A DNA stretch of 64,000 nt from sequence record NC_023688.1. One strand, given 5' to 3'. The position numbers and the translations under genes were made by a program. Positions 4,986 to 62,372 of the stretch are shown here, one piece after another. How positions within the stretch are numbered: position 1 is the first letter of the stretch; each line of letters opens with the position of its first letter. A model generated the notes under the pieces. It was given only the letters and a program-made list of their open reading frames with translations, was not told where the DNA came from and made no database searches.

Positions 4986-5036
4986 ATGTGGAGTGTTTAG
5001 ACTCCACATTATACACAATAAACCTGTCAGATAAAC
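4986..5036 (-). promoter_or_regulatory. Early-type promoter with overlapping 9-bp inverted repeat
   Basis: Minus strand GTTTAT-17-TATAAT (5036-5031, 5013-5008); IR atgtggagt 4986-4994 / actccacat 5001-5009. Confidence 0.7.
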
Positions 5037-5537
5037 TTAGATTACCTGTTTCTTCCACTTTTCGTTCTTGCTGATCATCGCGGTAACGATCAGTTCGCGA
5101 GCTTTATCGGCAATGAGCGATTTGTCCGGCTTGCCGCCCATTTCTTTTGCCATCTTTTCGTATAGCTCAACATAGACCAGATCGATGCCGCTGATAATCA
5201 GATCTGCGATCTCACAGTGCAGCGGTTCTGGATGCTGCTTGTGCGGCTTGTTAATGACTGTAGCAGCCTCGCCAAGCTCTTCGGTGCACTTACCAAGTAC
5301 ATAGTGCTGACTACGTTCAACGGGTGCAATCTGAGACGTCTCAAGCACGTTGGCGATAGGGTCAATCGGGTTAATACTGTGAGCAGCATTCCAACCCATT
5401 ACCCAAGTATTCCAGCAACTACCACGAACAATGAATTGCTGGTCTTCGTTCAGATTTTCCCAGTTGTAAGCTTTCTGAAATTCTCGCTCGCATTCCATAC
5501 GATTTTTCGGAGCAAGACGAACATCAAGTGGAAACAT
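5037..5537 (-). CDS. MazG-like nucleotide pyrophosphohydrolase domain protein
   Basis: KCTEELGE...EIADLI acidic helix motifs of the all-alpha NTP-PPase family in the C-terminal half. Confidence 0.7.
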   Translation of the reverse strand: MFPLDVRLAPKNRMECEREFQKAYNWENLNEDQQFIVRGSCWNTWVMGWNAAHSINPIDPIANVLETSQIAPVERSQHYVLGKCTEELGEAATVINKPHKQHPEPLHCEIADLIISGIDLVYVELYEKMAKEMGGKPDKSLIADKARELIVTAMISKNEKWKKQVI

Positions 5538-5539
5538 TT

Positions 5540-5743
5540 TTAACCCTTAATAAAAGCGTGAGCACGTTTGTAGCTGGCAATGATACCCTCAACGCGAGCA
5601 GCGATGTCGATATCAGACGGTACTCGAAGATTCATAATAGCGCGATTAATAACTTCGCGTGAACTTTCGATCAGATTGTAAACAGTGCGATCCAGAGTGT
5701 CGATTTGTTTTTGCTCGAACTCGGTAAAAATTCTTTCTTCCAT
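5540..5743 (-). CDS. Hypothetical protein
   Basis: 67-aa ORF tightly packed in operon. Confidence 0.6.
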   Translation of the reverse strand: MEERIFTEFEQKQIDTLDRTVYNLIESSREVINRAIMNLRVPSDIDIAARVEGIIASYKRAHAFIKG

Positions 5744-5745
5744 TT

Positions 5746-5919
5746 TTATTGCTCCTCGGTGTATTCGGTACCAGCATCAGAAACGATTCGTTCTGCCAAT
5801 GCCTTACCTTCTTTGTTGTAGATTACGGTGGTCATTTCGCCAAAGCCATACGAAGTCCGCTCAAAAGCACCTTCGACACTAGCCAGGATCTCGTTATAAC
5901 GTACTTCGTTGATTTTCAT
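5746..5919 (-). CDS. Small hypothetical protein (57 aa, not in ORF track)
   Basis: Hand-translated MKINEVRYNEILASVEGAFERTSYGFGEMTT...EYTEEQ; SD GAGG; fills the gap exactly. Confidence 0.6.
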   Translation of the reverse strand: MKINEVRYNEILASVEGAFERTSYGFGEMTTVIYNKEGKALAERIVSDAGTEYTEEQ

Positions 5920-5921
5920 TT

Positions 5922-6602
5922 TTAGCCTCTTAAAATGGAATGTGGGTCAACATTATCGCCAGTCGGAATTTCTTCCAATCCCCAAGCATAACGCTTAGAA
6001 AAAATCAGCATTAAAATGTCCTTGGCGCAGTCATGTATACTATCATGTTTCACGAACCCGTCAAGTGTTCCCTTTGGTAAAGGACAAATTGTTTGCATTC
6101 TTGAACACAAGTTTTGTTCAATAGCTGTTCTGATGTCGCGTTGACGACTAAAGTTAACAGGCTGTTGAAAGATTGTATCGTCTTGCTCTAATGACTCGGA
6201 AAGCATGTCCTCGAACATAGGAAAGTCAAAGCTATTCCCACGACACCAAGCCAGTGATTTCCAGTAGTCAATTTTGAAATCTGGACGTCTGATATAATCA
6301 TAGAACTTTGCCATCCCATCATTGATATCAACATCTTCCGAACTCGGTTTCAAGTTCTTTTTCGCATCGAATTCTTGTGTCTTCCACCATTCGATTACAG
6401 ACTTCATTTTATGTCGATTTGACTGAGACTTCAAGTTAAATTTGATTTTAATTCCACGAGACACAAGCTCTTGAAAGCTGGGAGGATTTTGAATATCCTC
6501 CCGATAAACGATAGCAGATAAATCCACTATCGTCGCATTCGCTTTGTTACTCAGTGTCTCCATGTCGATGATATAATCATCGTACTCGGGGACTTGAATC
6601 AT
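5922..6602 (-). CDS. dexA: DexA 3'-5' exonuclease A (DEDDh)
   Basis: IIDMETL, WCRGNSFDFP, RDIRT, HDSIHDCAKD; 226 aa. Confidence 0.92.
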   Translation of the reverse strand: MIQVPEYDDYIIDMETLSNKANATIVDLSAIVYREDIQNPPSFQELVSRGIKIKFNLKSQSNRHKMKSVIEWWKTQEFDAKKNLKPSSEDVDINDGMAKFYDYIRRPDFKIDYWKSLAWCRGNSFDFPMFEDMLSESLEQDDTIFQQPVNFSRQRDIRTAIEQNLCSRMQTICPLPKGTLDGFVKHDSIHDCAKDILMLIFSKRYAWGLEEIPTGDNVDPHSILRG

Positions 6603-7099
6603 TTGGTGCCAGAACTCCCGAAACCAGCTTCACCGCGAACGGTTTCGCGTGAAAACTCGGTGACTTCTTCCAGCTTAAAGCCTTTCACATACAGATGGAA
6701 TACCATTTGCACAACGCGATCACCCGGAGAAATAGCCAGATCGCTTTCGCCTTCGTTACGCAGCTTGATCATGATCTCGCCGTGGAAATCGGAATCGATA
6801 ACACCAGCGGTATTAGCGAGACGGACATAATGCTTGAAACCCAGACCAGAGCGCGGCAGAATGCAGCCATAAACGCCAACATCCAAGAAGAATGACGCGA
6901 GATCAAGCGCACCGATGTCCATTTTCAGACCAGACGGAATTACGAGATCTTGACCGGGTTTCAGAACCACGGTTTCTTCTAGTGCGGCTCGCAGATCAAT
7001 ACCAGCAGCTTCGGCACTCTTGAACTCAGGCAGTTCCCATTCGTCGCGATAATGAGGAAGACGAATAACAGGGATATTTTTCATTAAATTTTTCTCCAT
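6599..7099 (-). CDS. dut: Trimeric dUTPase
   Basis: AAGIDL, ILPRSGLG, GVIDSDFHGEI, GDRVVQM, RGEAGFGSSG (motifs 1-5). Confidence 0.95.
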   Translation of the reverse strand: MEKNLMKNIPVIRLPHYRDEWELPEFKSAEAAGIDLRAALEETVVLKPGQDLVIPSGLKMDIGALDLASFFLDVGVYGCILPRSGLGFKHYVRLANTAGVIDSDFHGEIMIKLRNEGESDLAISPGDRVVQMVFHLYVKGFKLEEVTEFSRETVRGEAGFGSSGTK

Positions 7100-12433: not shown

Positions 12434-12469
12434 TAGGGCTATTATCTCATAGCCCTACATCATTATAAA
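12434..12469 (-). promoter_or_regulatory. uvsX promoter with 9-bp IR over -10
   Basis: TTTATA-17-GATAAT; IR tagggctat 12434-42 / atagcccta 12449-57. Confidence 0.65.
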
Positions 12470-12470
12470 C

Positions 12471-15315: not shown

Positions 15316-15351
15316 ATTATAGATGCGCTCTCGATGTTAGTCAAGAGCGCA
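15316..15351 (-). promoter_or_regulatory. Gene 43 promoter with 8-bp IR around -35
   Basis: TTGACT-17-TATAAT (15344-39, 15321-16); IR tgcgctct 15324-31 / agagcgca 15344-51. Confidence 0.8.
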
Positions 15352-17293: not shown

Positions 17294-17383
17294 TTATATT
17301 TCTCTCATTGCGGGGTAAAACAGTTTAGAATAACTAGCATTATAAACTATTTTAAGTGGGGAGGTCAACCCTCCCCGAACTCA

Positions 17384-22138: not shown

Positions 22139-22248
22139 GTGCGCAGCACTTCGCGTTAGCGAGAGAAGATAAAATGTCTTATATATCTTTAATGAGAATC
22201 TATCTTCTCTTCTTCTTAGGTTTCAATGAGTTAGCGGCAAGCCGCAGT
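22139..22248. repeat. Non-coding palindromic element, copy A
   Basis: IR agagaagata 22162-71 / tatcttctct 22201-10 around an AT-rich core; aligns with the reverse complement of 38881-39001. Confidence 0.85.
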
Positions 22249-22265: not shown

Positions 22266-22288
22266 AAAAAAGCCACCCGAAGGTGGCT
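22266..22288 (-). terminator. Intrinsic terminator (UUCG loop)
   Basis: agccacc-cgaa-ggtggct with minus-strand U tract; a second hairpin agggagc-cgaa-gctccct lies at about 22307-22325. Confidence 0.85.
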
Positions 22289-22328
22289 AATTTATTAAGC
22301 TAATTCAGGGAGCCGAAGCTCCCTTTAT

Positions 22329-22721
22329 TTAGATAGAACAGACTGGAACCGTAGCAGTCTCTGGTTGCTCACCAGACGCTACCTCAGTGTTTTCATTTAC
22401 TTTCGCATATGCTTCCATCACAAGTTCATCGTAACGCTGTTTTGAACTCAACCAGAGCGATTCAAGAACAGAACGTTCGATAGGTTTCTGCATGGTCAGA
22501 ACACGAAGCTTTTCGATAGCGTAGATGTAACCATCTTTGTTACATACATGCAAACATTCTTCGGCGTGTTCGCGCAAACGTTTGATTTCTTTGCCATGTT
22601 TGGCCAAGTATTTCTTAGATTTCTTCTCGACCATAGCTTTAATCAAAGCTTGTTCGCGTTCTTTCGCTTCGTTAATTTCTTTTTGATCTTGATCGATAAG
22701 TTGATCGATATTCTCGTTCAT
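22329..22721 (-). CDS. a-gt.4: a-gt.4-like conserved protein
   Basis: KEIKRLREHAE...YIYAIEKLR motif; position. Confidence 0.7.
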   Translation of the reverse strand: MNENIDQLIDQDQKEINEAKEREQALIKAMVEKKSKKYLAKHGKEIKRLREHAEECLHVCNKDGYIYAIEKLRVLTMQKPIERSVLESLWLSSKQRYDELVMEAYAKVNENTEVASGEQPETATVPVCSI

Positions 22722-22966
22722 TACATTTCCCATTTAAACTTGTAGTGTGATTCTTCGGTATCGAGCGAAATGATTTCGCCAATTAGTTTACCATGCTTGA
22801 CGCTTATGACGTTAGAACGAATTGAAAGAGGATCAATAATCACCGGGATTCCAGATTCGAGTAATTTTATTTTGAGCATATAGGGGACTAATTCGGGTTC
22901 ATCATTGCACTCATGATAATTTTCCCAGAGTGGAATAGTTACTTCAATATTATTCGTCGGCATCAT
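22721..22966 (-). CDS. a-gt.5: a-gt.5-like conserved protein
   Basis: PELVPYMLKIKL...GIPVIIDPL motif; position after 55. Confidence 0.65.
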   Translation of the reverse strand: MMPTNNIEVTIPLWENYHECNDEPELVPYMLKIKLLESGIPVIIDPLSIRSNVISVKHGKLIGEIISLDTEESHYKFKWEM

Positions 22967-23474
22967 CGTCATCCTCAAGGAATGACAATCCGCCTAGTTG
23001 CTTTGGCTTTTTAGCTTTCTGATTTTTCATTGTAGCTTCAAAGTCGTTTGCTTTGGTCATCATGTCATTATAGAAAGATAGGTCAACTAATTTTGCCATA
23101 TCTTCATCTTCGGCATCATGGACGTGTTCCAAAAAATACTTATACTTTGCAGCTTCTTCTTTCTTGGAATGTCTAATTCGAGCAATGAACGAGCGAGCAC
23201 ATATCATGGTAATATATGCGTGTGGATTCGTATATCGTTCGGTGTCAAAGTTCTTGCAGTATTTCAAGCAAGTTTCAACAGCATCACCAACCATCAGCTC
23301 TTTCCAAGTGTCGGTATAACGACTAAATCGCCAATAATTCGTGAACCCATAAGCGATCTTCATGATTGAAGAACCAATGAACTCGGGCATTCGCTCACTG
23401 GGGTTTTCTTTCAACTTCTCTTTCCAAGCGACAAATGCTTGATAAAGTTCCTCGTTGTTAACGTAATCTGCCAT
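22950..23474 (-). CDS. 55: Late sigma factor gp55
   Basis: YVNNEELY, IMKIAYG, FSRYTDTWKELMVGDAVE, NFD...NPHAYITM. Confidence 0.95.
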   Translation of the reverse strand: MADYVNNEELYQAFVAWKEKLKENPSERMPEFIGSSIMKIAYGFTNYWRFSRYTDTWKELMVGDAVETCLKYCKNFDTERYTNPHAYITMICARSFIARIRHSKKEEAAKYKYFLEHVHDAEDEDMAKLVDLSFYNDMMTKANDFEATMKNQKAKKPKQLGGLSFLEDDDDADE

Positions 23475-23476
23475 AC

Positions 23477-23537
23477 AGTATACTTCCTTTGTTTTTGTCA
23501 ACAAAAGAAGTATACTATGTAAATGCAACTTTATAAA
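23477..23537 (-). promoter_or_regulatory. Gene 55 promoter and RBS-sequestering hairpin
   Basis: TTTATA-17-TATACT; 10-bp IR 23477-86 / 23507-16 whose 3' arm overlaps SD AAGGAAG. Confidence 0.7.
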
Positions 23538-24973
23538 CTCCGGAGCTTATTTATCCAGTCTGATACCAGTTTAACATGCTCGGGTTGTATGACGTCAAGC
23601 TTTAAATCCATTTTTGCTGACCATCGGTAGAACTTTCCTTGTTCTGCTTTTGTAAAGTCGAACATGTTCACGAAACTAAGTTTCTTTTTGCGAGGCAGTT
23701 CTTCTTTCTTTCGCTCTTTACGTGCTGGTCCACTAATCATGTGATTTGTGTCGATCTTAGCCTCTAACAGATATCTCGATTTCAGATACTCAGCAGCGCG
23801 TAAATCTGGGACCAACAGCGTGACTTTCCATGTTGAATGCTGATTACGAATATCGGTACGCAAGCACAATTGAAACACAGGCTCAAGATATTTCGATACC
23901 AAATAAGCATCAATCAACTTGTTTGTGTCCATGTCGTGACAGCTAGACAGACATTTCAGCAACTCGATTTGCCAAGGCATAGGATTATAGCTGAATAACG
24001 CTACCGCAGTTGTGTGGCTCATATAGCTGTTTAGCCCGTGTGGGTTATAAGCAACTCGATGTCCGACTTTCAATGCCGCACGATAACTATTTGTTGTGTA
24101 GATAAACGGCGTCATGCCAACTAAATCATACACGTTATCCTTGACCTTGTTGTAAACACTTTCTCCGTCGATATCTTTGTCGGCAGCATATCTAGACCAG
24201 ATACCATCGAATAATGGCACGATCTCGACTCTACTCGAATTCGGATACTGAATGAAATCCAGTTTTTTCATCAACGGGCTTGTTTTGAATTTCCAACCGC
24301 AAAAGTCTTTGAGAACAACACCGGTGAATGTCTCTTTAAAGTTTGCACAAGCGATTGTGATCTTAGAAAAGACGTTCCACTTTTGAGTTGTACTATCATC
24401 GATAAAGTATACCACGTTATCTTTGAGAATAACGGGGATATTTTGCAACAGAGATCTTGCTAATGAGAAAACAGAACTTGACACCACATCATGACCATAT
24501 AGACCATCGGTAGCAATCTTTTCTACTTTCGAACGACACTCTTCTTTTAATGTCATTCTGCCATCAACAGTGTCGCAGTATTTCCCGATAAAGTCAAGGT
24601 TGTCAGTGAATTTCAACTGATTTAATTGAACAAAATCAGGTACTTCATCGATATAGAGTTCATGATCTCTCATGTCTTCATAATCTGGATATGCCAGCAA
24701 TGCAGCATGAGTAATGAAAATGACTCTATTATGACCGATGCTTTCTTTTATTACCTCGGCGACGCTCTTGCTTCTACTAACATGATCTGAGTCAATGATA
24801 ATACTGTCATTGTCACCACTAATCTTGTTGTAAAAGTCAAAACTTTGTTGCGATAACTGACAACTAATTGACGCTATGATACAAGGCTTTTTGTTCTTTC
24901 GAACGTGAGTCAGAATAGCTTTTGTTTTACCAGCAGCAGGGACCGCCTGTAGAATCTCAACGCTTGATGCCAT
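23531..24973 (-). CDS. SF2-like helicase/NTPase of unknown function
   Basis: QAVPAAGKT Walker A, FITHAAL, LYIDEVP motif II, later Q...R(TDIR) motif VI-like. Confidence 0.65.
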   Translation of the reverse strand: MASSVEILQAVPAAGKTKAILTHVRKNKKPCIIASISCQLSQQSFDFYNKISGDNDSIIIDSDHVSRSKSVAEVIKESIGHNRVIFITHAALLAYPDYEDMRDHELYIDEVPDFVQLNQLKFTDNLDFIGKYCDTVDGRMTLKEECRSKVEKIATDGLYGHDVVSSSVFSLARSLLQNIPVILKDNVVYFIDDSTTQKWNVFSKITIACANFKETFTGVVLKDFCGWKFKTSPLMKKLDFIQYPNSSRVEIVPLFDGIWSRYAADKDIDGESVYNKVKDNVYDLVGMTPFIYTTNSYRAALKVGHRVAYNPHGLNSYMSHTTAVALFSYNPMPWQIELLKCLSSCHDMDTNKLIDAYLVSKYLEPVFQLCLRTDIRNQHSTWKVTLLVPDLRAAEYLKSRYLLEAKIDTNHMISGPARKERKKEELPRKKKLSFVNMFDFTKAEQGKFYRWSAKMDLKLDVIQPEHVKLVSDWINKLRSL

Positions 24974-25205
24974 TATCCACACCAAAAGCAATTACATCAT
25001 ATTCACGTAGAATGAAAGCAACCAGATGCTCACGCAACTCGTTTTTCAACCACTGAGTATTTGCAACTACCTTGGAGACATCAGCATACATCCATTCGAC
25101 TTGTTCGTCAAGCCATTTCGGATCACATGCCATACCGGTTTTCTTGCGAGCTTCAACAGCTTCAATGATACGAGTGTTACAGATATTACCAAATACAACG
25201 TTCAT
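24957..25205 (-). CDS. Hypothetical protein
   Basis: 82 aa, SD GAGGTG, own promoter. Confidence 0.6.
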   Translation of the reverse strand: MNVVFGNICNTRIIEAVEARKKTGMACDPKWLDEQVEWMYADVSKVVANTQWLKNELREHLVAFILREYDVIAFGVDNGIKR

Positions 25206-25225
25206 TTATTCACCTCTCGTTTAAT

Positions 25226-25262
25226 GTATGCATATTCTTGCATACTATTCAGTGTTCGTCAA
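25226..25262 (-). promoter_or_regulatory. Early promoter with 7-bp IR
   Basis: TTGACG-17-AAGAAT; IR gtatgca / tgcatac. Confidence 0.6.
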
Positions 25263-25281
25263 CAACAAAAAAGGTTCTGAC

Positions 25282-25824
25282 TTACGCCAGAACCTTGTTC
25301 CAATACTTGTATCCCATCTTTCGTGCGGTCTTATACGACTCAACAGCACTTAGCGGTTGCTTATGCAAACGTTTCGCACTCTTGACGACACCGGCACTAC
25401 CATGAGAATATATATAGATCAGTCCGACCCAAGAAGGAACTTCATCTGGCTTGACCAGTCCTTCGGGCACAGCATACCAGAAATAATTCGACATATGACC
25501 CGCTTCTAAAGCTTCCCGCTTCGACTTGCGCACCATTCTGTGAGTCCGGTATAGTGTAGGCTTCTCTAATTTTTCTGAGATTCGAACGTGTTTCTTTGCA
25601 TCCACTCTGAAATCAGATCGACTCACTTTGATTTCTATTTCATCACATAACCCACTAGGACGCAAGCAAAATAAATCTGCCTCGTTGTCATATTGAGTAT
25701 AGCAGTTCGGTACGATTATATCATACCTAAGTTGAAATTCGCGACTTCTGGCAATCGCTGCCTGTACGTCTTTTTCAGTCAAGACAACCTCCTTCAAACT
25801 TTTCGCTAAAAGTTTTGTATCCAC
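25282..25824 (-). CDS. PD-(D/E)XK nuclease-like protein (MmcB/DUF1052-like)
   Basis: EADLFCL..SGLCDEIEIKVSRSDFRVD.KK, NYFWYAVP, VGLIYI. Confidence 0.7.
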   Translation of the reverse strand: MDTKLLAKSLKEVVLTEKDVQAAIARSREFQLRYDIIVPNCYTQYDNEADLFCLRPSGLCDEIEIKVSRSDFRVDAKKHVRISEKLEKPTLYRTHRMVRKSKREALEAGHMSNYFWYAVPEGLVKPDEVPSWVGLIYIYSHGSAGVVKSAKRLHKQPLSAVESYKTARKMGYKYWNKVLA

Positions 25825-26065
25825 CTACCCATTTATCGTTGACAAAAATCTGAGGGTATGATCTTGGAGGCGTGTCTTTACCAGCTCTTACTCTACATTC
25901 TTCAATATTAGCACGATGATACGTGAAACCAATAGATGATGAATCTTTAATAAGAATCGGTATAAATGTAAATTCTAACCCATGAGAACGACAGAAATCG
26001 ACGGCAGCTTTACAACCGGGACATTGAACGAATTCTTCCGGTACGCCGTAGATTTCTATTTTCAT
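25775..26065 (-). CDS. nrdH: Glutaredoxin (NrdH-like)
   Basis: MKIEIYG..CPGC, YPQIFVNDKWVGGY. Confidence 0.85.
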   Translation of the reverse strand: MKIEIYGVPEEFVQCPGCKAAVDFCRSHGLEFTFIPILIKDSSSIGFTYHRANIEECRVRAGKDTPPRSYPQIFVNDKWVGGYKTFSEKFEGGCLD

Positions 26066-26334
26066 GCGTTTTCGTTAACCCAAGCTTTGAGTTCTTCGAA
26101 ACCACCGATATAATGACCGTCGATGAATGCTTGTGGCATAGATGTCACAACAACGCCATGTTCTTTAGCGCGACGAGTCAAATCGGCTTTATTGATTTTG
26201 TGTTCTTCTGTCTTGCTGATCTTGGCGATAGGCAGAAAAACATAGTCTACCAGTCTGGTATCAAGCAGACGCTTGGCATTCAGACAAGGTTTGCATTCGA
26301 GTTCGAGAGGATCGAATCCGTATAGCTCAATCAT
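26062..26334 (-). CDS. nrdC: Thioredoxin/glutaredoxin NrdC
   Basis: YGFD...CKPCLNAKRLL, MPQAFIDGHYIGGFEEL. Confidence 0.85.
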   Translation of the reverse strand: MIELYGFDPLELECKPCLNAKRLLDTRLVDYVFLPIAKISKTEEHKINKADLTRRAKEHGVVVTSMPQAFIDGHYIGGFEELKAWVNENA

Positions 26335-26343
26335 TTATATTCC

Positions 26344-26721
26344 TTACATGCTTTGAGTAAATGTTCTGGAGATTACGTCCAGTTGTTGTTCTTGTGTCAG
26401 TGCGGCGAAACGAATAGCGTAGCCACTAACGCGAATTACCAGATTCGGATATTTCTCTGGTTGTTCCATAGCCAGAACGAGTTGTTCACGACTGAGAACA
26501 TTCACGTTCAAATGTTGGCCGCTGTTATTCATAACTTCGAGTTCAACATCGCGAGTTTCGTTAAAATCAATCTCGGATTTGATAGCGTCGAATTTAAGAC
26601 TACCAGCTTTGAAGACTTGATCTTCGCCATAACCGGGAGCACAAATAACACGAACAGCGTCTTCGGTAATAATAAAGATGCCGCCTTTCAGACGACCTTT
26701 AAGAATTTGTAGAGCTTTCAT
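26344..26721 (-). CDS. grcA: Autonomous glycyl radical cofactor (GrcA/YfiD, T4 vs.6-like)
   Basis: GQHLNVNVL...[15 protein letters not shown]...[10 protein letters not shown]. Confidence 0.93.
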
Positions 26722-27199
26722 TTAATCTCTCTATGTGAATGATTCGTTGATTGCTTGACCCTCTGAAATTCAAATCGATGTCTTTTAATTCGGACACGAA
26801 CTTTCCATCCACGAGTACGTCAATCAGTGATGTAACTATAACATGTTTTCTTGATTCAAGTAAACATTCTTCTCTTGTGAAACCAGTCCACAGCCAAACA
26901 GTTTTGTTCGGGAACTCAGCACGAAACCACTTGAGGAATGACACCAAACCGTCTAGGTTGCGTTCATAGAACGGATCGCCCCCAAGTAGTGATATCCCAT
27001 CACGCTTAATACGGGAATCGCTCATATCACGTCTGACGCGCTCACGTAAATCAATTTCTTCTTCTGTCTGACCTTTCCACGCCCATGTGTGTTTGCTGAA
27101 ACAGCCGGGACACTGATGATCACAACCAGCAAGCCAGATGCTCGATCTTGTTCCTGTGCCGTTTAGCACATCCAATGATTTATAGTCAAGTATTAGCAC
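26699..27199 (-). CDS. nrdG: Anaerobic RNR activase (radical SAM)
   Basis: [44 protein letters not shown]. Confidence 0.96.
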
Positions 27200-27228
27200 G
27201 ATTATTTTTACTCCAAACTTGAAATGTT

Positions 27229-27247
27229 AAAGGGCCCGAAGGCCCTT
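27229..27247 (-). terminator. Terminator-like hairpin after nrdD
   Basis: aagggcc-cgaa-ggccctt. Confidence 0.7.
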
Positions 27248-27248
27248 A

Positions 27249-29363
27249 TTACAAATGTTTAACACGTTTTTGCACTTCGTCCTGCTTGCCGGCATTAAAT
27301 GCGCGAGAACCGGGGTTCCCCAAATAACCGCAGACGCGACGAATAACGTTCATTTTGGTATCATCATGATTGCCGCACTTAGGACATTCATATCCTTTAG
27401 ATGTAGCAGTGAATTCGCCGTGATAACCGCATTCAAAACAAACATCAACTGGGGTATTGGTCCCATAATACGGGGTATTCCTATAAGCATAATCCCAAAC
27501 ATCTTCGAGAGCTTTCAGATTATCTTTCATATTCGGATATTCACCGTATGAAATAAAACCACCAGAACTAAGCGGAATGAATTGCTTTTCAAAATCGATC
27601 TTGTCATACGGATTTGTATTATGACGAACGTCCAGATGGAAACTGTTGGTATAATAATCCTTATCAAAGATTTTATGATTCGGATATTTTTCACTGTCAA
27701 TCTTCGCGAAACGATAGCACAGACTTTCAGACGGAGTACCGTACAAACTGAATGCTAAACCGGTTTCAGCTTTCCAAGAGTCAACAAGTTCTTTCATTCG
27801 AGCAAGAACTGCCAGCGCAAAAGTCTGCTTCTCTTTATTTTCCATGATATGTTCGCTAATGCTTGACATCATGATTTCGGTAACTTCATGCATACCGATG
27901 TAACCGATACTAACAGATGCGCGACCGTTGTCAAATGCTTTCATGATATCGTCATCTGGGTTCAGACGAACACCACAAGCACCTTCAACGTAAAGAATCG
28001 GAGCGACGCTGGCTTTAACGCCACGCAGACGATCAACGCGAGCCATCAAAGCTTGCTTGGTGATTTCCATACGTTCTTCCAGAAGATCCCAGAAACGCAT
28101 AGGATTGCCATTTGAATCAAGAGCGATTCGCGGCAAGTTCAGAGTGACCACACCCAAGTTGTTACGGCCTTCATGAACTTCAACACCGTTTTCGTCTTCC
28201 CAGCGATGCAAGAAACTACGGCATCCCATTGGGAATTTGAAACTACCAGTCACTTCAACGATCTTATCATAGCTCAGAATGTCCGGATACATACGTTTCG
28301 CAGCGCATTCCAGAGCCAACTGTTTGATACGATACAGCGGATCAGTCGGGTTCAAGTTGTGTCCGTCTTTCAGAGCGAATACCAGTTTCGGGAAAACAGG
28401 GGTGATACCCTCTTTACCAAGACCAGCCAAACGAACTTTCAGGATTGCTTCTTGAATCAGTTCTGACTCCCAGCTAGTACCAAGACCAAAGCCGAAGGTA
28501 CAGAACGGAGTTTGACCATTTGCGGAGTGCAGAGTGTTGACCTCATACTCCAGACCTTGCATAGCATCATATACAGCTTTGCGAGTCTTTGCAATAGCAT
28601 ATTGCTGTTGATCTGGAATTTTCCAGTAACGAGCTTCATCCAAGTGCTTTTCGTGTGTCATTTTAACATACGGTGCCAGCACTTCGTCAATGCGATTGAT
28701 TGTGTTACCGCCATAAATGTGACTTGCTACTTGAGCGATGATTTGAGCAATCACGGCAGCAGCGGTAGAAATGCTTTTCGGAGTCTCGATTTGAGCATTA
28801 CCCATTCTGAAACCACGTTTCAACATTCCTTCAACATCTATCAACATGCAGTTAAACATTGGGAAGAACGGTGAATAATCAAGATCGTGGAAGTGAATCC
28901 AACCATTTTCGTGTGCTTGCATAACTTCAACAGGCAGATAATGCTTGGCGAAATGCTTACTAACGATACCAGCTACCAAATCGCGTTGAGTTGGAATTAC
29001 CTTGGCGTCTTTGTTTGCATTTTCATTCATGATTGATTCATCAGATTGCTTCATCAGTCCCATGATGCGTTTTGTCATGTCTGAGTTCAGGTCGCGAGCG
29101 ACATCGCGATCATAGCGATATTCAATGTATGCGCGAGCCACAGCGGGATAGCGCGATCGCATCAGTGTATCTTCTACAACGTGTTGAATTTCGCCAATCG
29201 TCACCATAGAGCGACCAATGAGCTTACGAACAACTGCTTCTGTAGCGTGATGTGGGAAGGTGGGATCGGTAATACCGATAGATTGCAGAGAATTAGAGAT
29301 TGCTGTTTCAATAAAAGATTGATCGAAATCAACGATTCGACCATCGCGTTTTTGTACTTGCAT
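27249..29363 (-). CDS. nrdD: Class III anaerobic ribonucleoside-triphosphate reductase with N-terminal ATP cone
   Basis: VQKRDG ATP cone, IHFHDLD, PMGCRS, TPSESLC, CFEC/CPKC zinc site, RRVCGYL glycyl-radical loop. Confidence 0.97.
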   Translation of the reverse strand: MQVQKRDGRIVDFDQSFIETAISNSLQSIGITDPTFPHHATEAVVRKLIGRSMVTIGEIQHVVEDTLMRSRYPAVARAYIEYRYDRDVARDLNSDMTKRIMGLMKQSDESIMNENANKDAKVIPTQRDLVAGIVSKHFAKHYLPVEVMQAHENGWIHFHDLDYSPFFPMFNCMLIDVEGMLKRGFRMGNAQIETPKSISTAAAVIAQIIAQVASHIYGGNTINRIDEVLAPYVKMTHEKHLDEARYWKIPDQQQYAIAKTRKAVYDAMQGLEYEVNTLHSANGQTPFCTFGFGLGTSWESELIQEAILKVRLAGLGKEGITPVFPKLVFALKDGHNLNPTDPLYRIKQLALECAAKRMYPDILSYDKIVEVTGSFKFPMGCRSFLHRWEDENGVEVHEGRNNLGVVTLNLPRIALDSNGNPMRFWDLLEERMEITKQALMARVDRLRGVKASVAPILYVEGACGVRLNPDDDIMKAFDNGRASVSIGYIGMHEVTEIMMSSISEHIMENKEKQTFALAVLARMKELVDSWKAETGLAFSLYGTPSESLCYRFAKIDSEKYPNHKIFDKDYYTNSFHLDVRHNTNPYDKIDFEKQFIPLSSGGFISYGEYPNMKDNLKALEDVWDYAYRNTPYYGTNTPVDVCFECGYHGEFTATSKGYECPKCGNHDDTKMNVIRRVCGYLGNPGSRAFNAGKQDEVQKRVKHL

Positions 29364-29390
29364 TTAGGTTTCCGTTGTGAGTGTATGGGA

Positions 29391-29451
29391 AAAATAAAAA
29401 ACGAGTCTTTCGACTCGTTTCTATTGTACTGCTATTTAGTGTTTCGATAAA
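29391..29451 (-). promoter_or_regulatory. nrdD leader: promoter(s) followed by terminator-like hairpin
   Basis: TTTATC-17-TACAAT with nested ACTAAATA (29440-33), then aaacgagtc/gactcgttt hairpin plus U tract. Confidence 0.6.
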
Positions 29452-29452
29452 C

Positions 29453-29848
29453 TCAACCGAACAAAGAAAGTAGCTCGGTGTCTTCTTTTTTCAGATTGGC
29501 AACGATGTTAGCCAGCGCAGCATAGCGGATAGAACAACGACCTTTATTTACATCGATACCAGCTTCTTTCAGCGCAGACAACGGAATCGGACGAACGTTA
29601 TCAAAAAAGATATCGTTGGTATTCAGTTCTTTGTCAGTCCAAGTGCCGGTGTAAACCTCGGTGATATCAGCGAAATAAGCTTTGTTCCCTTTGTCAACGA
29701 TTGCGATGTGTTTTACCTTGTTGATGCGTTCGGCAGCACCGATAAAACCTTCGGCTTTCTTCTCTTTCAGCATACGCTCAAAGCTCAGACAGCCAGCAGT
29801 ACCATCCATTTCGCGACTCGGGATTACAACGATAGTATCTTGTTTCAT
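29453..29848 (-). CDS. Hypothetical protein with possible C-terminal clamp-binding peptide (ELLSLFG)
   Basis: 131 aa from MKQDT; SD GAGGA; own promoter. Confidence 0.7.
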   Translation of the reverse strand: MKQDTIVVIPSREMDGTAGCLSFERMLKEKKAEGFIGAAERINKVKHIAIVDKGNKAYFADITEVYTGTWTDKELNTNDIFFDNVRPIPLSALKEAGIDVNKGRCSIRYAALANIVANLKKEDTELLSLFG

Positions 29849-29874
29849 GATTTGTTCCTCAGCTTTGTTTCGAT

Positions 29875-29908
29875 AGAGCCATCTTATCATGATGGCTCTT
29901 TGTGTCAA
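29875..29908 (-). promoter_or_regulatory. Early promoter with 9-bp IR
   Basis: TTGACA-16-(TGn)TAAGAT; IR agagccatc / gatggctct. Confidence 0.75.
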
Positions 29909-29916
29909 CTAACTTT

Positions 29917-30195
29917 TCAGATTTTTTCGATTCTTGGACAACCAATCACAGACAGACCGGCGTTTTCGAGTTTCTGGATGCAACTGATAACATCATAGTG
30001 TTCTTCGATTACTGCATATGCTTTTTTGTCTTCGAGGATCTCATTCAGATAATGATCTCGCTCGGGGTGAGTAAATCGCCGCATATGAGCACGATTCATC
30101 GCCTGTTGATTTTTCAGCTTGGTATAAGCAACGCGAGTTGTGATCCAAGCTTTCATCTGAGTTGGAGATACAAACACACATACAGTAACGGACAT
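29917..30195 (-). CDS. Hypothetical protein
   Basis: MSVTVCV start after SD GAGGA; co-transcribed with the mini-pilin ORF. Confidence 0.65.
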   Translation of the reverse strand: MSVTVCVFVSPTQMKAWITTRVAYTKLKNQQAMNRAHMRRFTHPERDHYLNEILEDKKAYAVIEEHYDVISCIQKLENAGLSVIGCPRIEKI

Positions 30196-30218
30196 AATAT
30201 TTTCCTCAGTTATCAACA

Positions 30219-30308
30219 TTAGTGGAACAGTGCTGGGATAGATACGGATGCCAGAATTCCGATAATCGCAACAACAACCAACAGTTCAATCAGAGTAAAG
30301 CCTTTCAT
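30219..30308 (-). CDS. 29-aa type IV prepilin N-terminal peptide (mini-pilin), not in ORF track
   Basis: MKG|FTLIELLVVVAIIGILASVSIPALFH*: class III signal with G-1, F1, E5, G14, P22 in exact pilin register; SD GAGGA 6 nt upstream. Confidence 0.85.
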   Translation of the reverse strand: MKGFTLIELLVVVAIIGILASVSIPALFH

Positions 30309-30337
30309 TTTCATTCCTCGTTTGTTTTGATGTGTCC

Positions 30338-30365
30338 ATCATAGCAGCACAAAAATCGGTGTCAA
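30338..30365 (-). promoter_or_regulatory. Early promoter of the mini-pilin cassette
   Basis: TTGACA-16-(TGn)TATGAT immediately after the nrdB terminator. Confidence 0.8.
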
Positions 30366-30374
30366 GGCACAAAC

Positions 30375-30400
30375 AAAAAAAATCGCCCGAAGGCGATTTT
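30375..30400 (-). terminator. nrdAB terminator
   Basis: aaatcgcc-cgaa-ggcgattt with long minus-strand U tract. Confidence 0.9.
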
Positions 30401-30401
30401 C

Positions 30402-31532: not shown

Positions 31533-31580
31533 TTTTATTCCTTGTTATAGGGGCCGAAGCCCCTAGTGATAGACTTGATA

Positions 31581-33849: not shown

Positions 33850-33888
33850 ATTATACATCATTCATGGTTGATGTAAACATTTTACATC
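33850..33888 (-). promoter_or_regulatory. nrdA promoter with 8-bp IR over -35
   Basis: (G)TTTACA-16-TATAAT; IR gatgtaaa 33870-77 / tttacatc 33881-88. Confidence 0.7.
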
Positions 33889-33928
33889 TTTAGATTTTTA
33901 AAAATCCCGACTTAACGGGATTTCTTAT

Positions 33929-35510: not shown

Positions 35511-35542
35511 GCCAGTCTATAGAAGACTGGCCGTTATGTCAA
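35511..35542 (-). promoter_or_regulatory. Early promoter with 8-bp IR
   Basis: TTGACA-17-TAGACT; IR gccagtct / agactggc followed by a U-rich tract. Confidence 0.7.
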
Positions 35543-38805: not shown

Positions 38806-38880
38806 GATTATCTCCTCAGTTGAATACCAGTAGTATAGACGTTTCCGATATGATGTCAACTAAAAAATGTCGCGCCAGCG

Positions 38881-39001
38881 ACTGCGGAGCTAACTCATTG
38901 TAACCTAATGAGAAGAGAAGATAGATCTTCATTAAAGGTATATAAGGAACTTTATCTTCTCTTCTTTTAACATTTAGCGGCAAAGCCGCAGTGCTACGCA
39001 C
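38881..39001. repeat. Non-coding palindromic element, copy B
   Basis: 13-bp IR 38911-23 / 38953-65 and outer 7-bp IR actgcgg/ccgcagt; inverted copy of 22139-22248. Confidence 0.85.
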
Positions 39002-39003
39002 AT

Positions 39004-39462
39004 TTAGTATCTTAGATTGAAGCGAGTTAACACAATGTTATTGGTACTATAATCTAATGTGATGTTATACCAGCGACCATACTCGGTACATACATTGCTA
39101 TAACCGATCTTACAATTCGGACTTGCCCATTGCAGAGTGTTGGCAATGCCTTGATCTGTTCTATCTGAACTCATTTTGACCAGCACATTTTTACCAGTGT
39201 TTACTATGCAACCGCTACTAATGAAATCTTGATCGAACTCTTGTGGCTTAATCTCGATGTCAATCTTGCGAATAAAGCGCATAGGCATAGGCACCTCAGC
39301 ATCCTTTAGCTTTAGCATGACACTGTATTCAGCTAGGATATCAGCCTCCAAAACGCGATTGGTAAGCTGTGAGTGATACAGCTCGATTACTTGTTCTTTC
39401 GATAGATCTGGTTTATTTTCGAATTCATAGAAATCAACCATGTTTATAATTTGTACTCTCAT
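39004..39462 (-). CDS. Hypothetical protein
   Basis: 152 aa, SD GGAG. Confidence 0.65.
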   Translation of the reverse strand: MRVQIINMVDFYEFENKPDLSKEQVIELYHSQLTNRVLEADILAEYSVMLKLKDAEVPMPMRFIRKIDIEIKPQEFDQDFISSGCIVNTGKNVLVKMSSDRTDQGIANTLQWASPNCKIGYSNVCTEYGRWYNITLDYSTNNIVLTRFNLRY

Positions 39463-41636: not shown

Positions 41637-41671
41637 GGGAGCATTATTACATGCTCCCGGATTTTCGTCAA
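41637..41671 (-). promoter_or_regulatory. Early promoter with 8-bp IR
   Basis: TTGACG-17-AATAAT; IR gggagcat / atgctccc. Confidence 0.65.
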
Positions 41672-44356: not shown

Positions 44357-44391
44357 AGAGCCATTATTGCATGGCTCTGTGCGTTAGTCAA
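44357..44391 (-). promoter_or_regulatory. Early promoter with 8-bp IR
   Basis: TTGACT-17-AATAAT; IR agagccat / atggctct. Confidence 0.7.
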
Positions 44392-44398: not shown

Positions 44399-44686
44399 TT
44401 ATTCGGCTTTACAAATCATTGTGAGTTGCATAACCTTTTCAGAATCACCAGCACCAGACAACCAAGCGGTGTGATCCCATTGCTCAGTGATAGAAGCATT
44501 GGTGAACATCTTAGAACGAGACAGGTCGCGCTCGATTGCTTGCAGTGTGCCAACGTAGTCGGAAGTAACAACAATCATGTTATTGCCTTCACATTTACCA
44601 TCGAAGTTAACGATGATTTGCACATTACGAACAGAGTATTTGCGAGTTGCGAACAGTGCTTTGAATTCGGCGGCTACGTTTTTCAT
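44399..44686 (-). CDS. Hypothetical protein
   Basis: 95 aa, cassette RBS. Confidence 0.6.
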   Translation of the reverse strand: MKNVAAEFKALFATRKYSVRNVQIIVNFDGKCEGNNMIVVTSDYVGTLQAIERDLSRSKMFTNASITEQWDHTAWLSGAGDSEKVMQLTMICKAE

Positions 44687-44715
44687 GATGTATTCCTCAG
44701 TTGTCTTGATTTGAT

Positions 44716-44750
44716 AGAGACATTATCGCATGTCTCTTGGCGTTCGTCAA
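44716..44750 (-). promoter_or_regulatory. Early promoter with 8-bp IR
   Basis: TTGACG-17-GATAAT; IR agagacat / atgtctct. Confidence 0.7.
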
Positions 44751-45719: not shown

Positions 45720-45755
45720 TATGGCTCATTATACAGTAACGAGCCATACCGTCAA
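45720..45755 (-). promoter_or_regulatory. Early promoter with 8-bp IR
   Basis: TTGACG-16-TATAAT; IR tatggctc / gagccata. Confidence 0.7.
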
Positions 45756-47430: not shown

Positions 47431-47661
47431 TCAGAATTTTTCGATGTTAGATTTTACAAACTCAACAACCTGTGCAGTCAGCTTTTTACCAAGCTTCTTG
47501 CTAGAACCCGGACGACCAGTGTTAGCATAAACAGTGGCAGTGCCGTTAACGTCAAACACTCGAACATAGATACCGTTGACCCATACCGCAACTTCGATCT
47601 TACCATTCATTTCTTGCTTAGAGAATTGAGCAACACTGATAGTTTCGATTTGCTTGATCAT
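47431..47661 (-). CDS. Hypothetical protein
   Basis: MIKQIET start with SD GAGGA. Confidence 0.6.
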   Translation of the reverse strand: MIKQIETISVAQFSKQEMNGKIEVAVWVNGIYVRVFDVNGTATVYANTGRPGSSKKLGKKLTAQVVEFVKSNIEKF

Positions 47662-47691
47662 GATATTTTCCTCTGTTCGTGTGTTTGACGT

Positions 47692-47749
47692 CTTGCGTCT
47701 TGATGTAGGTATAATATCAAACCGGTACCAAGACGCAAGCTCTTTTTTC
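47692..47749 (-). promoter_or_regulatory. Promoter flanked by 11-bp IR
   Basis: TTGCGT-16-(TGn)TATTAT; cttgcgtcttg ... caagacgcaag. Confidence 0.6.
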
Positions 47750-47751
47750 AC

Positions 47752-47985
47752 TTAATCCAAATAAACTTTTGGACCATAGTGTTCATAACCTTCGCGAATC
47801 AAGAATTCGCATTCTTGACCTTCTCGTTCTTCGTCATGAACATAGGTACCAGTCCACTCCCAAGCACCATCTTCACTGCGAACCGGCTTGGTCTTACACA
47901 CAAATCGAGCAACATGAAAGCCATAACACTCAACAAACGGAGTACCAACTTCCAGTTTCTTCACACATTCTTCAATTTTACTCAC
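47752..47985 (-). CDS. Hypothetical protein
   Basis: 77 aa. Confidence 0.55.
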   Translation of the reverse strand: MSKIEECVKKLEVGTPFVECYGFHVARFVCKTKPVRSEDGAWEWTGTYVHDEEREGQECEFLIREGYEHYGPKVYLD

Positions 47986-49930: not shown

Positions 49931-49965
49931 AGGTCCTATTCTACATGAACAGGACCTGATGTCAA
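49931..49965 (-). promoter_or_regulatory. Early promoter with 7-bp IR
   Basis: TTGACA-16-TAGAAT; IR aggtcct / aggacct. Confidence 0.65.
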
Positions 49966-54335: not shown

Positions 54336-54378
54336 AAGCGCGTGACTGTAATTTACCACAATGTCACGCGCTTGTAAA
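54336..54378 (-). promoter_or_regulatory. Promoter/terminator hybrid with 11-bp IR
   Basis: (G)TTTACA-17-TAAATT; IR aagcgcgtgac / gtcacgcgctt followed by U tract. Confidence 0.65.
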
Positions 54379-59791: not shown

Positions 59792-60253
59792 TTATTCCTC
59801 AAATGTAAGTAATGTAATAACACGGTCTTCGCGTCGAATAATGCGAACATCATTAGGTGGATTTTTAACATACTCACGAATTTCGTTTTGTAGCTTTTCC
59901 GTGAACATTCCGTGTCTATTACCCCATCTGATTTTCATCATATCAGAGTCAACAACAGGATACAAGCCATATTCCAGTTTTATTTGTTCTTCGTCAAACT
60001 TATAATCTCGAACTCGTTCCATATAGCGAACTAAAAAGTGGTCTGACAGATTCAGACAACCAACAGTTCGCCAAGTGTTATAACAAAAGTGATCTTGAAT
60101 TCGTCCATTCTTCCAGTCGCCCGGCAATACAGTTCGTTCAACACCATTCAAAATACGATTGCTTTCAGCAATGCAATCGTTAATCTCTTGAAGTTGTTGA
60201 TTGAGTTTTAGAACCTTCGACGGACGAACTCGTCTAAGTCTACGACCTTGCAT
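59792..60253 (-). CDS. Hypothetical protein
   Basis: 153 aa; LSDHFLVRYMERV. Confidence 0.6.
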   Translation of the reverse strand: MQGRRLRRVRPSKVLKLNQQLQEINDCIAESNRILNGVERTVLPGDWKNGRIQDHFCYNTWRTVGCLNLSDHFLVRYMERVRDYKFDEEQIKLEYGLYPVVDSDMMKIRWGNRHGMFTEKLQNEIREYVKNPPNDVRIIRREDRVITLLTFEE

Positions 60254-60255
60254 AC

Positions 60256-60843: not shown

Positions 60844-60897
60844 GATGATCTCCTATGTGTTTTCGACAATGAGCACTCGAAAGTGCTCATTAGCAAA

Positions 60898-61320
60898 TTA
60901 CGCAGTAACGAAATCGGCGATGATTCGCGGATTGGCAATGTGACCACTCAGTTTCCAGATAGAAACGGTGTCGGTCGTGTTCTTGATCTTGTGTTCGCGA
61001 GCAACTTCCATCGCTTGTTTATCAGTCATAGGACTCATAAACACGCTTTGACCGTCTGCATTAGTAATTTGAACGATAGAGGTCAGTTTGCCTTGTTTGA
61101 CACCAACACCAATATCACTCATGATCTTCTTGGCTTCGGTATCGTTGATCTCATCCAGAGACTTGATACTCAGATAAACACGTTTGCCGTCAATGCGCAG
61201 AACACCAGAACAAACACCATCACGCCAAGTATAATCTTCCATCTTAGCAACAGCGCCGTGATGCTTAGATTTTACGTTGTTTACACGAACCATACCACGA
61301 TAAGAAGTTTTTACAGCCAT
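60898..61320 (-). CDS. Hypothetical protein
   Basis: 140 aa, SD GAGGTG; hairpin atgagcact/agtgctcat downstream. Confidence 0.6.
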   Translation of the reverse strand: MAVKTSYRGMVRVNNVKSKHHGAVAKMEDYTWRDGVCSGVLRIDGKRVYLSIKSLDEINDTEAKKIMSDIGVGVKQGKLTSIVQITNADGQSVFMSPMTDKQAMEVAREHKIKNTTDTVSIWKLSGHIANPRIIADFVTA

Positions 61321-61328
61321 TTTTCACC

Positions 61329-61889
61329 TCAGATAAATTTGAATGTTTGTAGTGCTTCTTGACTAAGTTGCACTACCAGGTCTTTTTCGATACAGAGCTT
61401 TGAATACAGGTCCAGCTTATCAGCTTTCACCAGTATGTCAACGATTTTATCGAACTTTTCTTTTGCTTCCCAATCGCCGTCAGCAACGATTGTAAATTCA
61501 GCAGTCGCAACAACAAACTCGCCTTCTATACCACGCGCTTTGGTCAAGCTGTAGGCATAGAAATCAAAGCTTTCACGCTTTGCAACTGCGGCATATTTTC
61601 GCACTTCCTCGATGCTATGCATGACCGCATCAAGAGGGAACATTGTGTTGAAATTGTATTTCCACTTGCCATGATAGTCGAATGCGCCACAATGACGTTG
61701 CAGATCAACAAACAGGTTTTCATGACTGTCTTCATACATCGGACGATGTGCGCGATGATTCCATCCACAATGAGTATGGCCCATCTTACCAGCTTGTTGA
61801 CAGTTCACGCGCTCCAGATCATCTTGGATTGGTTTGCGTCCAGTGAACTTTTTAAACAGTTTGGCATCCATTTCGGTTTTAAGACGCAT
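61329..61889 (-). CDS. Hypothetical protein with N-terminal Cys/His motif
   Basis: TGRKPIQDDLERVNC..AG..GHTHCGW. Confidence 0.6.
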   Translation of the reverse strand: MRLKTEMDAKLFKKFTGRKPIQDDLERVNCQQAGKMGHTHCGWNHRAHRPMYEDSHENLFVDLQRHCGAFDYHGKWKYNFNTMFPLDAVMHSIEEVRKYAAVAKRESFDFYAYSLTKARGIEGEFVVATAEFTIVADGDWEAKEKFDKIVDILVKADKLDLYSKLCIEKDLVVQLSQEALQTFKFI

Positions 61890-62052
61890 ATGAGATCTCC
61901 AAAATACCGTATATGAAGATGATGAACATCACGATTACCCCATTTTTGAGACAGTCGATCATTTGCATCGGTGTGAACTTTGAATTAAACGTCATGTAAA
62001 TCATACGAGCTATGAACATCGCAACAAATACAATCAGAATATAATAACGCAT
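61879..62052 (-). CDS. Small membrane protein (57 aa, not in ORF track)
   Basis: MRYYILIVFVAMFIARMIYM...VIVMFIIFIYGILEISYAS. Confidence 0.55.
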   Translation of the reverse strand: MRYYILIVFVAMFIARMIYMTFNSKFTPMQMIDCLKNGVIVMFIIFIYGILEISYAS

Positions 62053-62315
62053 TACATGTCCTCCAGAATAACGATCTCACGGTCTTTCGGGTTTGCGTCA
62101 TAGTCAAAGAAAGACATCACGCCATCTTTGCGAGCGGTCAAATAACCAAGATGATTATCAACTTGCTCGATTGTGTAGCCGTTTTCTTTCAGAAACATAA
62201 CAACTTCTTGATGCGCGTGAGTGCGACCACACCCAGTCCAGTCAATCACAGCGGCTTTAGCACCAGCGTTGTTAGAAACAAACAGAGCATTGCGAACGTT
62301 ATTCGGATTAAACAT
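62052..62315 (-). CDS. Hypothetical protein
   Basis: 87 aa, own promoter. Confidence 0.6.
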   Translation of the reverse strand: MFNPNNVRNALFVSNNAGAKAAVIDWTGCGRTHAHQEVVMFLKENGYTIEQVDNHLGYLTARKDGVMSFFDYDANPKDREIVILEDM

Positions 62316-62337
62316 GGTGTATTCCTCTTGTCTTGAT

Positions 62338-62372
62338 ATGGTTCATTATACGCTAATGAACCATGGCGTCAA
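62338..62372 (-). promoter_or_regulatory. Early promoter with 11-bp IR
   Basis: TTGACG-16-TATAAT; IR atggttcatta / taatgaaccat. Confidence 0.75.

Follow-up and report, generated by a model that had tools for sequence, protein, structure and literature searches.

The first 64,000 nucleotides of the genome of Aeromonas phage PX29, a T4-like member of the Straboviridae, contain early promoters in which a hairpin is fitted around the -10 element. The whole of this stretch, an identical match to GU396103 bases 1-64000, is called the window here. The elements are probably cassettes of the promoter-stem-loop (PeSL) type described in other T4-like phages, and their hairpin, present in read-through RNA, would attenuate read-through and/or protect the 3' end of the upstream message. 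Comparison with related phages showed that the hairpins are selected for pairing and not for sequence. They are a known kind of element in a phage group where it had not been catalogued, and no new mechanism is involved.

The minus strand carries all annotated genes of the window and features are hence read on that strand. Gene order runs from rIIA through topoisomerase, replication genes and nrd genes to a long row of small hypothetical genes. Hairpins were listed as all perfect inverted repeats (IRs) with arms of 7 bp or more around a 3-16-nt loop. Promoters were defined blind to these repeats, requiring a -35 with at least 5/6 matches, a TAnnnT-type -10 with at least 4/6 matches, a spacer of 16-18 nt, and a downstream Shine-Dalgarno (SD) sequence and start codon opening an open reading frame (ORF). 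This promoter scan was run over the entire 222-kb PX29 genome.

Hairpins in the window fall into two clearly separate classes. Ordinary terminators make up the first, recognisable by a GC stem capped by a TTCG or GAAA tetraloop and followed by a T run. The other is promoter-internal and has the order TTGAC(A/G/T), 2-11 nt, 5' arm, loop with the (often TG-extended) -10, 3' arm and ATC. The promoters themselves, recovered by our own scan and by an independent scanner, consist of TTGAC(A/G/T), 16-17 nt and a TAnnnT-type -10, often with an extended TG. At 11 window promoters the 5' arm lies in the spacer and the 3' arm in the discriminator, with the (extended) -10 in the loop or 3' arm. The distance from the -10 to the end of the 3' arm is 6-8 nt in all cassettes, the arm stopping at -1/-2, immediately before the conserved ATC. 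A preliminary description of this sequence had reported IRs overlapping the -10 at 13 promoters. Eleven were exactly as described, but the IR at 4986 lies downstream of its -10 and 23477 has no promoter-overlapping IR. Inspection of the sites bore out its statement that the arm sequences differ between them.

Each cassette spans approximately 70 nt and fills a short intergenic gap, these gaps being only about 60-90 nt. Its parts are, in order, an A/T-rich tract, a near-consensus sigma70 promoter, the stem-loop, an unstructured A/C-rich leader from ATC, a GAGG-type SD and the start codon. The tract is typically AAAAAGT, and A+T content in the 20 nt 5' of the -35 is 73% (14 cassettes) compared with 58% for the genome. 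All cassettes sit between annotated genes and in all of them the start codon falls 25-40 nt past the -10. Approximately 17 hairpin-bearing copies are spread across the genome, and of the 11 in the window, 7 are surrounded by hypothetical genes at 41-63 kb. Early-gene leaders (e.g. 62315-62337, 44686-44715 and 29890-29874) share an A/C-rich, G-poor motif, ATCAAGAC or ATCGAAAC, followed by GAGGAATACATCATG. The leader motif is common to the cassettes of phage RB49, which suggests a conserved, presumably unstructured and highly translatable 5' UTR (untranslated region) across distant T4-like genera.

The repeats are strongly enriched in these promoters. Gene-linked promoters of the whole genome were all on the minus strand (51/51), and in 13 of them a perfect IR (7 bp or longer) lay between the spacer and +12. 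When spacer and discriminator were shuffled separately, the 2000 trials averaged 0.63 such promoters and never exceeded 5, so the excess over shuffled controls anticipated in the preliminary description was found. Such a repeat occurred in just 6 of 250 promoter-like matches without gene context (Fisher p = 3e-7). Predicted RNA folds of the 11 hairpin promoter cores ranged from -8.6 to -20.7 kcal/mol (z -3.3 to -6.5); those of five early promoters without a hairpin had z values of -1.7 to +0.6. Roughly half of the credible early promoters in the window bear a hairpin. No Rfam family matched in the window.

To follow the hairpins between phages, syntenic regions of Aeh1 (approximately 82% identical), Ah1 and AsFcp_4 (99%) were compared. 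Covariation was assessed by flank-anchored orthologue mapping with a permutation test; 21 in-register cassettes (PX29, Aeh1, Ah1 and RB49) were also aligned with MAFFT, which broke the register, and that alignment was dropped. In Aeh1, the orthologue of the promoter at 62372 has two compensatory pairs and two G.U pairs, and that at 45755 has one compensatory pair and one U.G. The stem at 41671 shows a compensatory G-C to C-G change in Aeh1, and the hairpin upstream of uvsX (12460) a compensatory A-T to G-C change. Within PX29, the paralogous cassettes at 44750 and 44391 differ by one compensated pair (A-T vs C-G). At three orthologous promoters the hairpin has been swapped for a different one in the same place. 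Aeh1 and Ah1 have another hairpin sequence at 54378, the Aeh1 stem at 49965 is AGGCTC/GAGCCT in place of the PX29 stem, and at 25262 both relatives have a different 7-bp stem with a shifted register. At 35511 the arms are kept and the loop is altered in Aeh1 and Ah1.

Stems accumulated 0.157 substitutions per site compared with 0.171 for flanks and loops. In spite of this, 90 of 93 canonical pairs in the eleven gap-free hairpins were left after 20 substitutions, above the neutral mean of 80.2 and the maximum of 89 reached in 20,000 runs. Substitution mapping dropped inserted bases, making the rows for promoters 25262 and 29908 unreliable in it, and the pairs it scored as broken at 54378 and 49965 represent hairpin replacement. 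The stems are substituted as fast as their flanks yet still paired, so it is pairing that is under selection and not sequence. This agrees with the earlier proposal that structure is conserved, on the evidence of compensatory changes in both Aeh1 and Ah1. As far as we could find, compensation, replacement in place and a sense-strand G.U bias (below) together are the first comparative evidence that the PeSL stem-loop itself is selected.

The same changes bear on whether the repeats serve as operators, bound by a dimeric regulatory protein. Their dyad symmetry around the -10 would suit such a protein. However, the arms differ among sites and change by compensation between phages, and the loops vary from 5 to 16 nt. 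The differing arms and variable loops leave no shared operator recognition sequence, and we regard operators as extremely improbable.

We also considered whether pairing is selected in DNA or in RNA. The preliminary description had offered a supercoil-dependent cruciform. A cruciform, or a hairpin in unwound DNA, would hide or expose the -10 and so let early promoters sense supercoiling, the phage topoisomerase or replication. The repeats are perfect in DNA, single-stranded DNA folds have z values of -2.5 to -6.5, and the -10 is always in or beside the loop, all of which fit this idea. Cruciform extrusion favours long arms and very short loops, however, and here the arms are merely 7-11 bp, the loops 5-16 nt and the DNA dG just -5.6 to -13.9 kcal/mol per strand. 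RB49 also has a form of the stem-loop wholly within the spacer, where the -10 would not be sequestered. Mismatches point the same way. A cruciform requires pairing on both strands, so that each G.T on the sense strand costs an A.C opposite. Among promoter stems with one internal non-Watson-Crick pair, the eight wobble mismatches were all G.T or T.G on the sense strand, with no A.C, and five others were transversion-type. One-sided orthologue changes in stems are likewise wobble (G.U) pairs, and several RNA stems are extended by G.U pairs. Taken together, these results argue against the cruciform, which we consider very unlikely, and for a hairpin that acts as RNA.

The expected position of the transcription start indicates which RNA would carry it. 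RB49 early promoters are C-rich at -3 to -1, in agreement with mapped 5' ends (Nolan 2006, PMC1524935), and in the RB49 cassettes these C residues are the tail of the 3' arm. By analogy, the A of ATC, directly after the stem, is probably where local transcripts start. A start just past the stem would mean that local transcripts lack the hairpin and read-through transcripts carry all of it. The earlier proposal that the hairpin forms only in read-through RNA thus finds support, the 3' arm ending at -1/-2 before the ATC where the start is expected.

These observations suggest the following mechanism. Spacer and discriminator would be the only promoter positions free to vary, and the hairpin would take them as its 5' and 3' arms, leaving the constrained -10 in the loop. 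Confinement of the arms to spacer and discriminator results in variable arms at a fixed geometry. The hairpin would be packed into these sequence-free parts because the intergenic gaps are so short. Polymerase from the local promoter would begin at the A of ATC and make RNA without the hairpin, and transcripts arriving from upstream would carry the entire hairpin as RNA. There, as RB49 reporter assays suggest, it may attenuate or terminate read-through and/or shield the upstream message at its 3' end, with the result that the local promoter would account for most expression of each small early gene. Being repeated and alike, the cassettes may also serve as portable boundaries at which genes are gained or lost, as shown for one locus (PX29p062, below). 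The cassettes would thus be compact promoter-plus-insulator modules, and this geometric account places the hairpin simply by letting its arms fill only the sequence-free parts of the promoter. As they mark the boundaries of early transcription units, they are useful for annotating such phages.

Structure confined to read-through RNA could instead gate translation, the read-through hairpin blocking the ribosome so that only locally started RNA is translated. This principle is established in T4, where the promoters of e, soc, 49 and I-TevI lie in the 5' strand of a helix that sequesters the ribosome-binding site (PMC3014915). The T4 and PX29 arrangements are alike in that a promoter embedded in hairpin DNA gives a structure only in transcripts from upstream, and locally started PX29 RNA would also lack the hairpin. 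One hairpin in the window, that of gene 55 (23475-23518), does appear to sequester an SD, with a predicted unpaired probability of 0.12 in read-through RNA compared with 0.53 without the 5' arm. The T4 helices, however, hold the SD or AUG and a late promoter, whereas in PX29 the promoter is an early sigma70 promoter and the SD is outside the helix, 15-25 nt 3' of the stem in the main class. Mean predicted SD accessibility across 12 promoters was approximately 0.47 in local and 0.46 in read-through RNA. The same held for the 4986-5009 hairpin, which left predicted accessibility of the 60plus39 SD unchanged (0.61 vs 0.57). Translational gating was judged very improbable indeed, and for the main class it was rejected on this equal SD accessibility in local and read-through RNA.

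The PX29 elements closely resemble the cassettes of other T4-like phages. Arbiol et al. 2010 (PMC2839356) described five positional subclasses of PeSL stem-loop, most commonly between the -35 and -10 or overlapping the -10; the published positions are upstream, over the -35, within the spacer, over the -10 and before +1. In a lacZ reporter, one of their stem-loops lowered expression as rrnB T1 does, and sequences resembling PeSLs were noted close to gene 43 of Aeh1. PeSLs were later extended to T4/PST and KVP40/nt-1 (Comeau et al. 2014, PMC4122927). Like the PX29 elements, PeSLs of RB49/phi1, T4/PST and KVP40/nt-1 contain the same parts in short gaps between small early genes, and their stem-loop is variable in sequence but fixed in position. 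The PX29 elements show every sequence-level feature of a PeSL: they have the A/T tract, promoter, stem-loop, SD and start codon, and they recur in multiple copies amid small genes of unknown function.

We applied the same script to the RB49 hyperplastic region that holds the tested PeSLs. RB49 has two main forms, one with a G-run/C-run stem wholly in the spacer and one with the -10 in the loop. In the second form the spacer supplies the 5' arm and the discriminator the 3' arm, the loop encloses the -10, and the stem is followed by ATC and a ATCGAAAC or ATCAAGAC leader. This is the PX29 layout, leader motif included, so the claim in the preliminary description that the PX29 promoters differ architecturally from PeSLs is wrong. 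RB49 PeSLs have G-run/C-run arms whereas those of PX29, Aeh1 and Ah1 are of mixed sequence, and in the PX29 group the -10-in-loop subclass dominates whilst the stem-wholly-in-spacer subclass, common in RB49, is rare. As far as we found, the published PeSL description does not include covariation or G.U evidence such as that from the PX29 group. With these results the range of PeSL cassettes comes to include Angelvirus and Cinqassovirus, the Aeromonas phages of the Aeh1/PX29 group.

One locus illustrates the link between cassettes and gene content. Gene PX29p062 (44399-44686, minus strand) lies between two near-identical cassettes (44716-44750 and 44357-44391). Aeh1 has no PX29p062 and a single cassette, and in Ah1 the gene is present, likewise between two identical cassettes. 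A gene between two cassettes in one phage and a single cassette in a relative is a pattern known from PeSLs, which this locus matches. Overall, breakpoints of indels of at least 150 nt fell within 60 nt of a cassette in 9 of 52 cases against Aeh1 and 8 of 54 against Ah1, compared with approximately 4% of random positions.

Several observations weigh against reading the elements as insulating PeSL cassettes. As in intrinsic terminators, a stable RNA hairpin lies at a gene 3' end, and 35511 and 54336 are followed by a T run. These are the only two, in agreement with the earlier statement that most lack a U tract; the other 9 of 11 are followed by an A/C-rich sequence of the AUCAAA type, and PX29's own classic terminators form a visibly separate class. 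With 9/11 hairpins lacking a U tract, efficient termination is not predicted from sequence. An independent terminator scan called the TTCG-loop terminators but not the nine U-tract-less cassettes. Internal hairpins and upstream terminators were not significantly complementary, showing only a trend (1/14 vs 5/23, p = 0.38). The G.T asymmetry is only suggestive and not decisive, since a broad hairpin scan, dominated by chance hairpins in coding sequence, already gave 36 G.T to 23 A.C. Indels prefer gene boundaries and approximately one in five boundaries has a promoter, so that the breakpoint enrichment is demonstrable against random positions only. Differences between PX29 and AsFcp_4 were mixed, with one replacement ending at promoter 30365 and others at promoter-less boundaries. 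Finally, the 460-nt segment with site 47692 was lost by deletion between 9-nt direct repeats that lie within genes. This segment, window positions 47468-47928, is absent from the 99% identical AsFcp_4, where deletion between TTGTTGAGT direct repeats fuses PX29p071 with PX29p070 and no cassette is involved.

A distinct insulator needing a phage or host factor, for example a hairpin-dependent but U-tract-independent stop or processing signal, or a structure read in the non-template DNA strand, is an unlikely alternative. In that case the fit to spacer and discriminator would tune promoter kinetics, through the GC-rich discriminator, as well as read-through, and would not be mere space-saving.

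The hairpin could also be mainly a recombination or mobility feature of a selfish cassette, a single-stranded DNA hairpin serving strand exchange, template switching or a structure-specific nuclease, with any effect on transcription secondary. The cassettes are repeated and mutually similar, PX29p062 lies between two copies, and the Aeh1 and Ah1 breakpoints fall near cassettes at above the random rate. In RB49 one crossover was mapped to the loop, and mini-circles were detected in RB49/phi1 by inverse PCR (Arbiol 2010, PMC2839356). The G.T bias on one strand fits a single-stranded DNA hairpin too. However, the preference of indels for gene boundaries would in principle make the breakpoint enrichment disappear. 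Recent PX29/AsFcp_4 replacements are often at cassette-less boundaries and one deletion arose by microhomology. Moreover, homologous recombination depends on sequence identity, and no part of the cassette varies more than the arms. We consider a primary role in recombination unlikely and favour the PeSL-type cassette with a read-through RNA hairpin.

The individual cassettes, all on the minus strand, are given here with predicted RNA dG in kcal/mol. The promoter at 62338-62372 (TTGACG, 16 nt, TATAAT) has a hairpin at 62338-62364 with an 11-bp arm and 5-nt loop (dG -13.4, z -4.6), the -10 lying in the loop and 3' arm and ATC following the stem. That at 54336-54378 (TTTACA, 17 nt, TAAATT) has an 11-bp arm and a 16-nt loop at 54336-54373 (dG -20.7, z -6.2), and its T run makes it terminator-like. 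Two hairpins are lengthened by G.U pairing. At 49931-49965 (TTGACA, 16 nt, TAGAAT) the hairpin at 49931-49957 has 7 perfect bp, or 11 bp with one G.U, and a 13-nt loop (dG -17.2, z -4.5). At 45720-45755 (TTGACG, 16 nt, TATAAT) the hairpin at 45720-45748 has 8 perfect bp, or up to 14 bp with G.U, also with a 13-nt loop (dG -19.5, z -5.6).

Three cassettes share an 8-bp arm and 6-nt loop. The upstream copy flanking PX29p062 (44716-44750) has its hairpin at 44716-44737 and an extended -10, TGcGATAAT; the downstream copy (44357-44391) has its hairpin at 44357-44378 (dG -12.9, z -4.0). The third is at 41637-41671, with its hairpin at 41637-41658 (dG -15.3, z -4.5). At 35511-35542 (TTGACA, 17 nt, TAGACT) the hairpin at 35511-35531 has an 8-bp arm and 5-nt loop (dG -15.1, z -5.3) and is terminator-like with its T run. 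The cassette at 29875-29908 (TTGACA, 16 nt, TAAGAT; hairpin 29875-29899, arm 9 bp, loop 7 nt, dG -14.9, z -5.0) forms the left edge of a segment replaced relative to Aeh1. The hairpin of lowest predicted stability is at 25226-25245 in the promoter at 25226-25262 (TTGACG, 17 nt, AAGAAT; arm 7 bp, loop 6 nt, dG -8.6, z -3.9), just downstream of a classic terminator at 25271-25296. Upstream of uvsX, the promoter at 12434-12470 has a T4-like -35, GTTTAT, an extended -10 and a hairpin at 12434-12457 with a 9-bp arm (13 bp in the RNA fold) and 6-nt loop (dG -18.1, z -6.5).

The three IRs that had been assigned to the -35 box (15324, 33870 and 47692) are all real and also lie on the minus strand. The hairpin at 15324-15351 (8 bp, 12-nt loop) holds, in its 5' arm and loop, the -35 (TTGACT) of the promoter preceding gene 43, and is kept in Aeh1 and Ah1 without covariation. 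That at 33870-33888 is AT-rich (8 bp, 3-nt loop), its 3' arm being the -35 TTTACA of the nrdA promoter, and a classic terminator lies just upstream at 33902-33923. At 47692-47739 lies an 11-bp IR with a loop of approximately 26 nt, extended to as many as 14 pairs when folded as RNA. It has a weak -35, TTGCGT, in its 5' arm, the -10 region in the loop and its 3' arm in the ATCAAGAC leader. The hairpin at 4986-5009 (minus strand, 9 bp, 6-nt loop) begins inside the extended -10 (TGTGTATAAT) and runs downstream, leaving 2 nt between its end and the SD of 60plus39, a topoisomerase gene.

Further PX29 hairpins lie over a -35 at 3119-3138 and just 5' of a promoter at 25271-25296 and 30379-30400. Those at 3119-3138 and 17358-17376 (minus strand) are classic terminator hairpins with a TTGAC -35-like hexamer in the loop or 3' arm. 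In Aeh1 the 3119-3138 stem has exchanged a G-C for an A-T pair, a compensatory change. Aeh1 has lost the TTGACC of 17358-17376, and the apparent promoter there is therefore probably fortuitous.

The gene 55 hairpin (23475-23518, minus strand) is not of the promoter-hairpin class. It is an imperfect hairpin of approximately 19 bp whose 3' arm holds the SD of gene 55, encoding the late sigma factor, and no promoter was recognised within it. Both Aeh1 and Ah1 retain the hairpin, with compensatory changes. The TTGACA in its loop is not conserved. The arrangement looks like one for controlling gene 55 at translation.

PX29 also has a dispersed repeat, approximately 130-150 nt long and intergenic, in seven copies that are 84-92% identical and occur in both orientations. 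Two are in the window (38860-39010 and 22162-22235) and the others lie at genome positions 76947-77089, 106112-106221, 135487-135618, 175491-175621 and 219160-219298. The repeat is palindromic, with a 13-bp central stem around an AT-rich core and flanking GC hairpins (RNA fold -47 kcal/mol, z = -5), and is also present at several Aeh1 loci. It had no Rfam match and no mention under 'repeat' in the Aeh1 genome paper. It could be an element resembling a miniature inverted-repeat transposable element (MITE), a bidirectional terminator block or a replication signal.

A copy of this repeat adjoins a hot spot of gene content between gene 47 and a-gt.4 (window 22288-22307). Here Aeh1 (22534-32083) has approximately 9.5 kb that is absent in PX29, comprising three very large ORFs (ORF025c-027c) and the short ORF028c, and Ah1 has approximately 1.1 kb. 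The nrdA gene is intact in PX29 (window 32462-32502) but in Aeh1 is split by the mobE homing endonuclease gene, an addition of approximately 0.9 kb.

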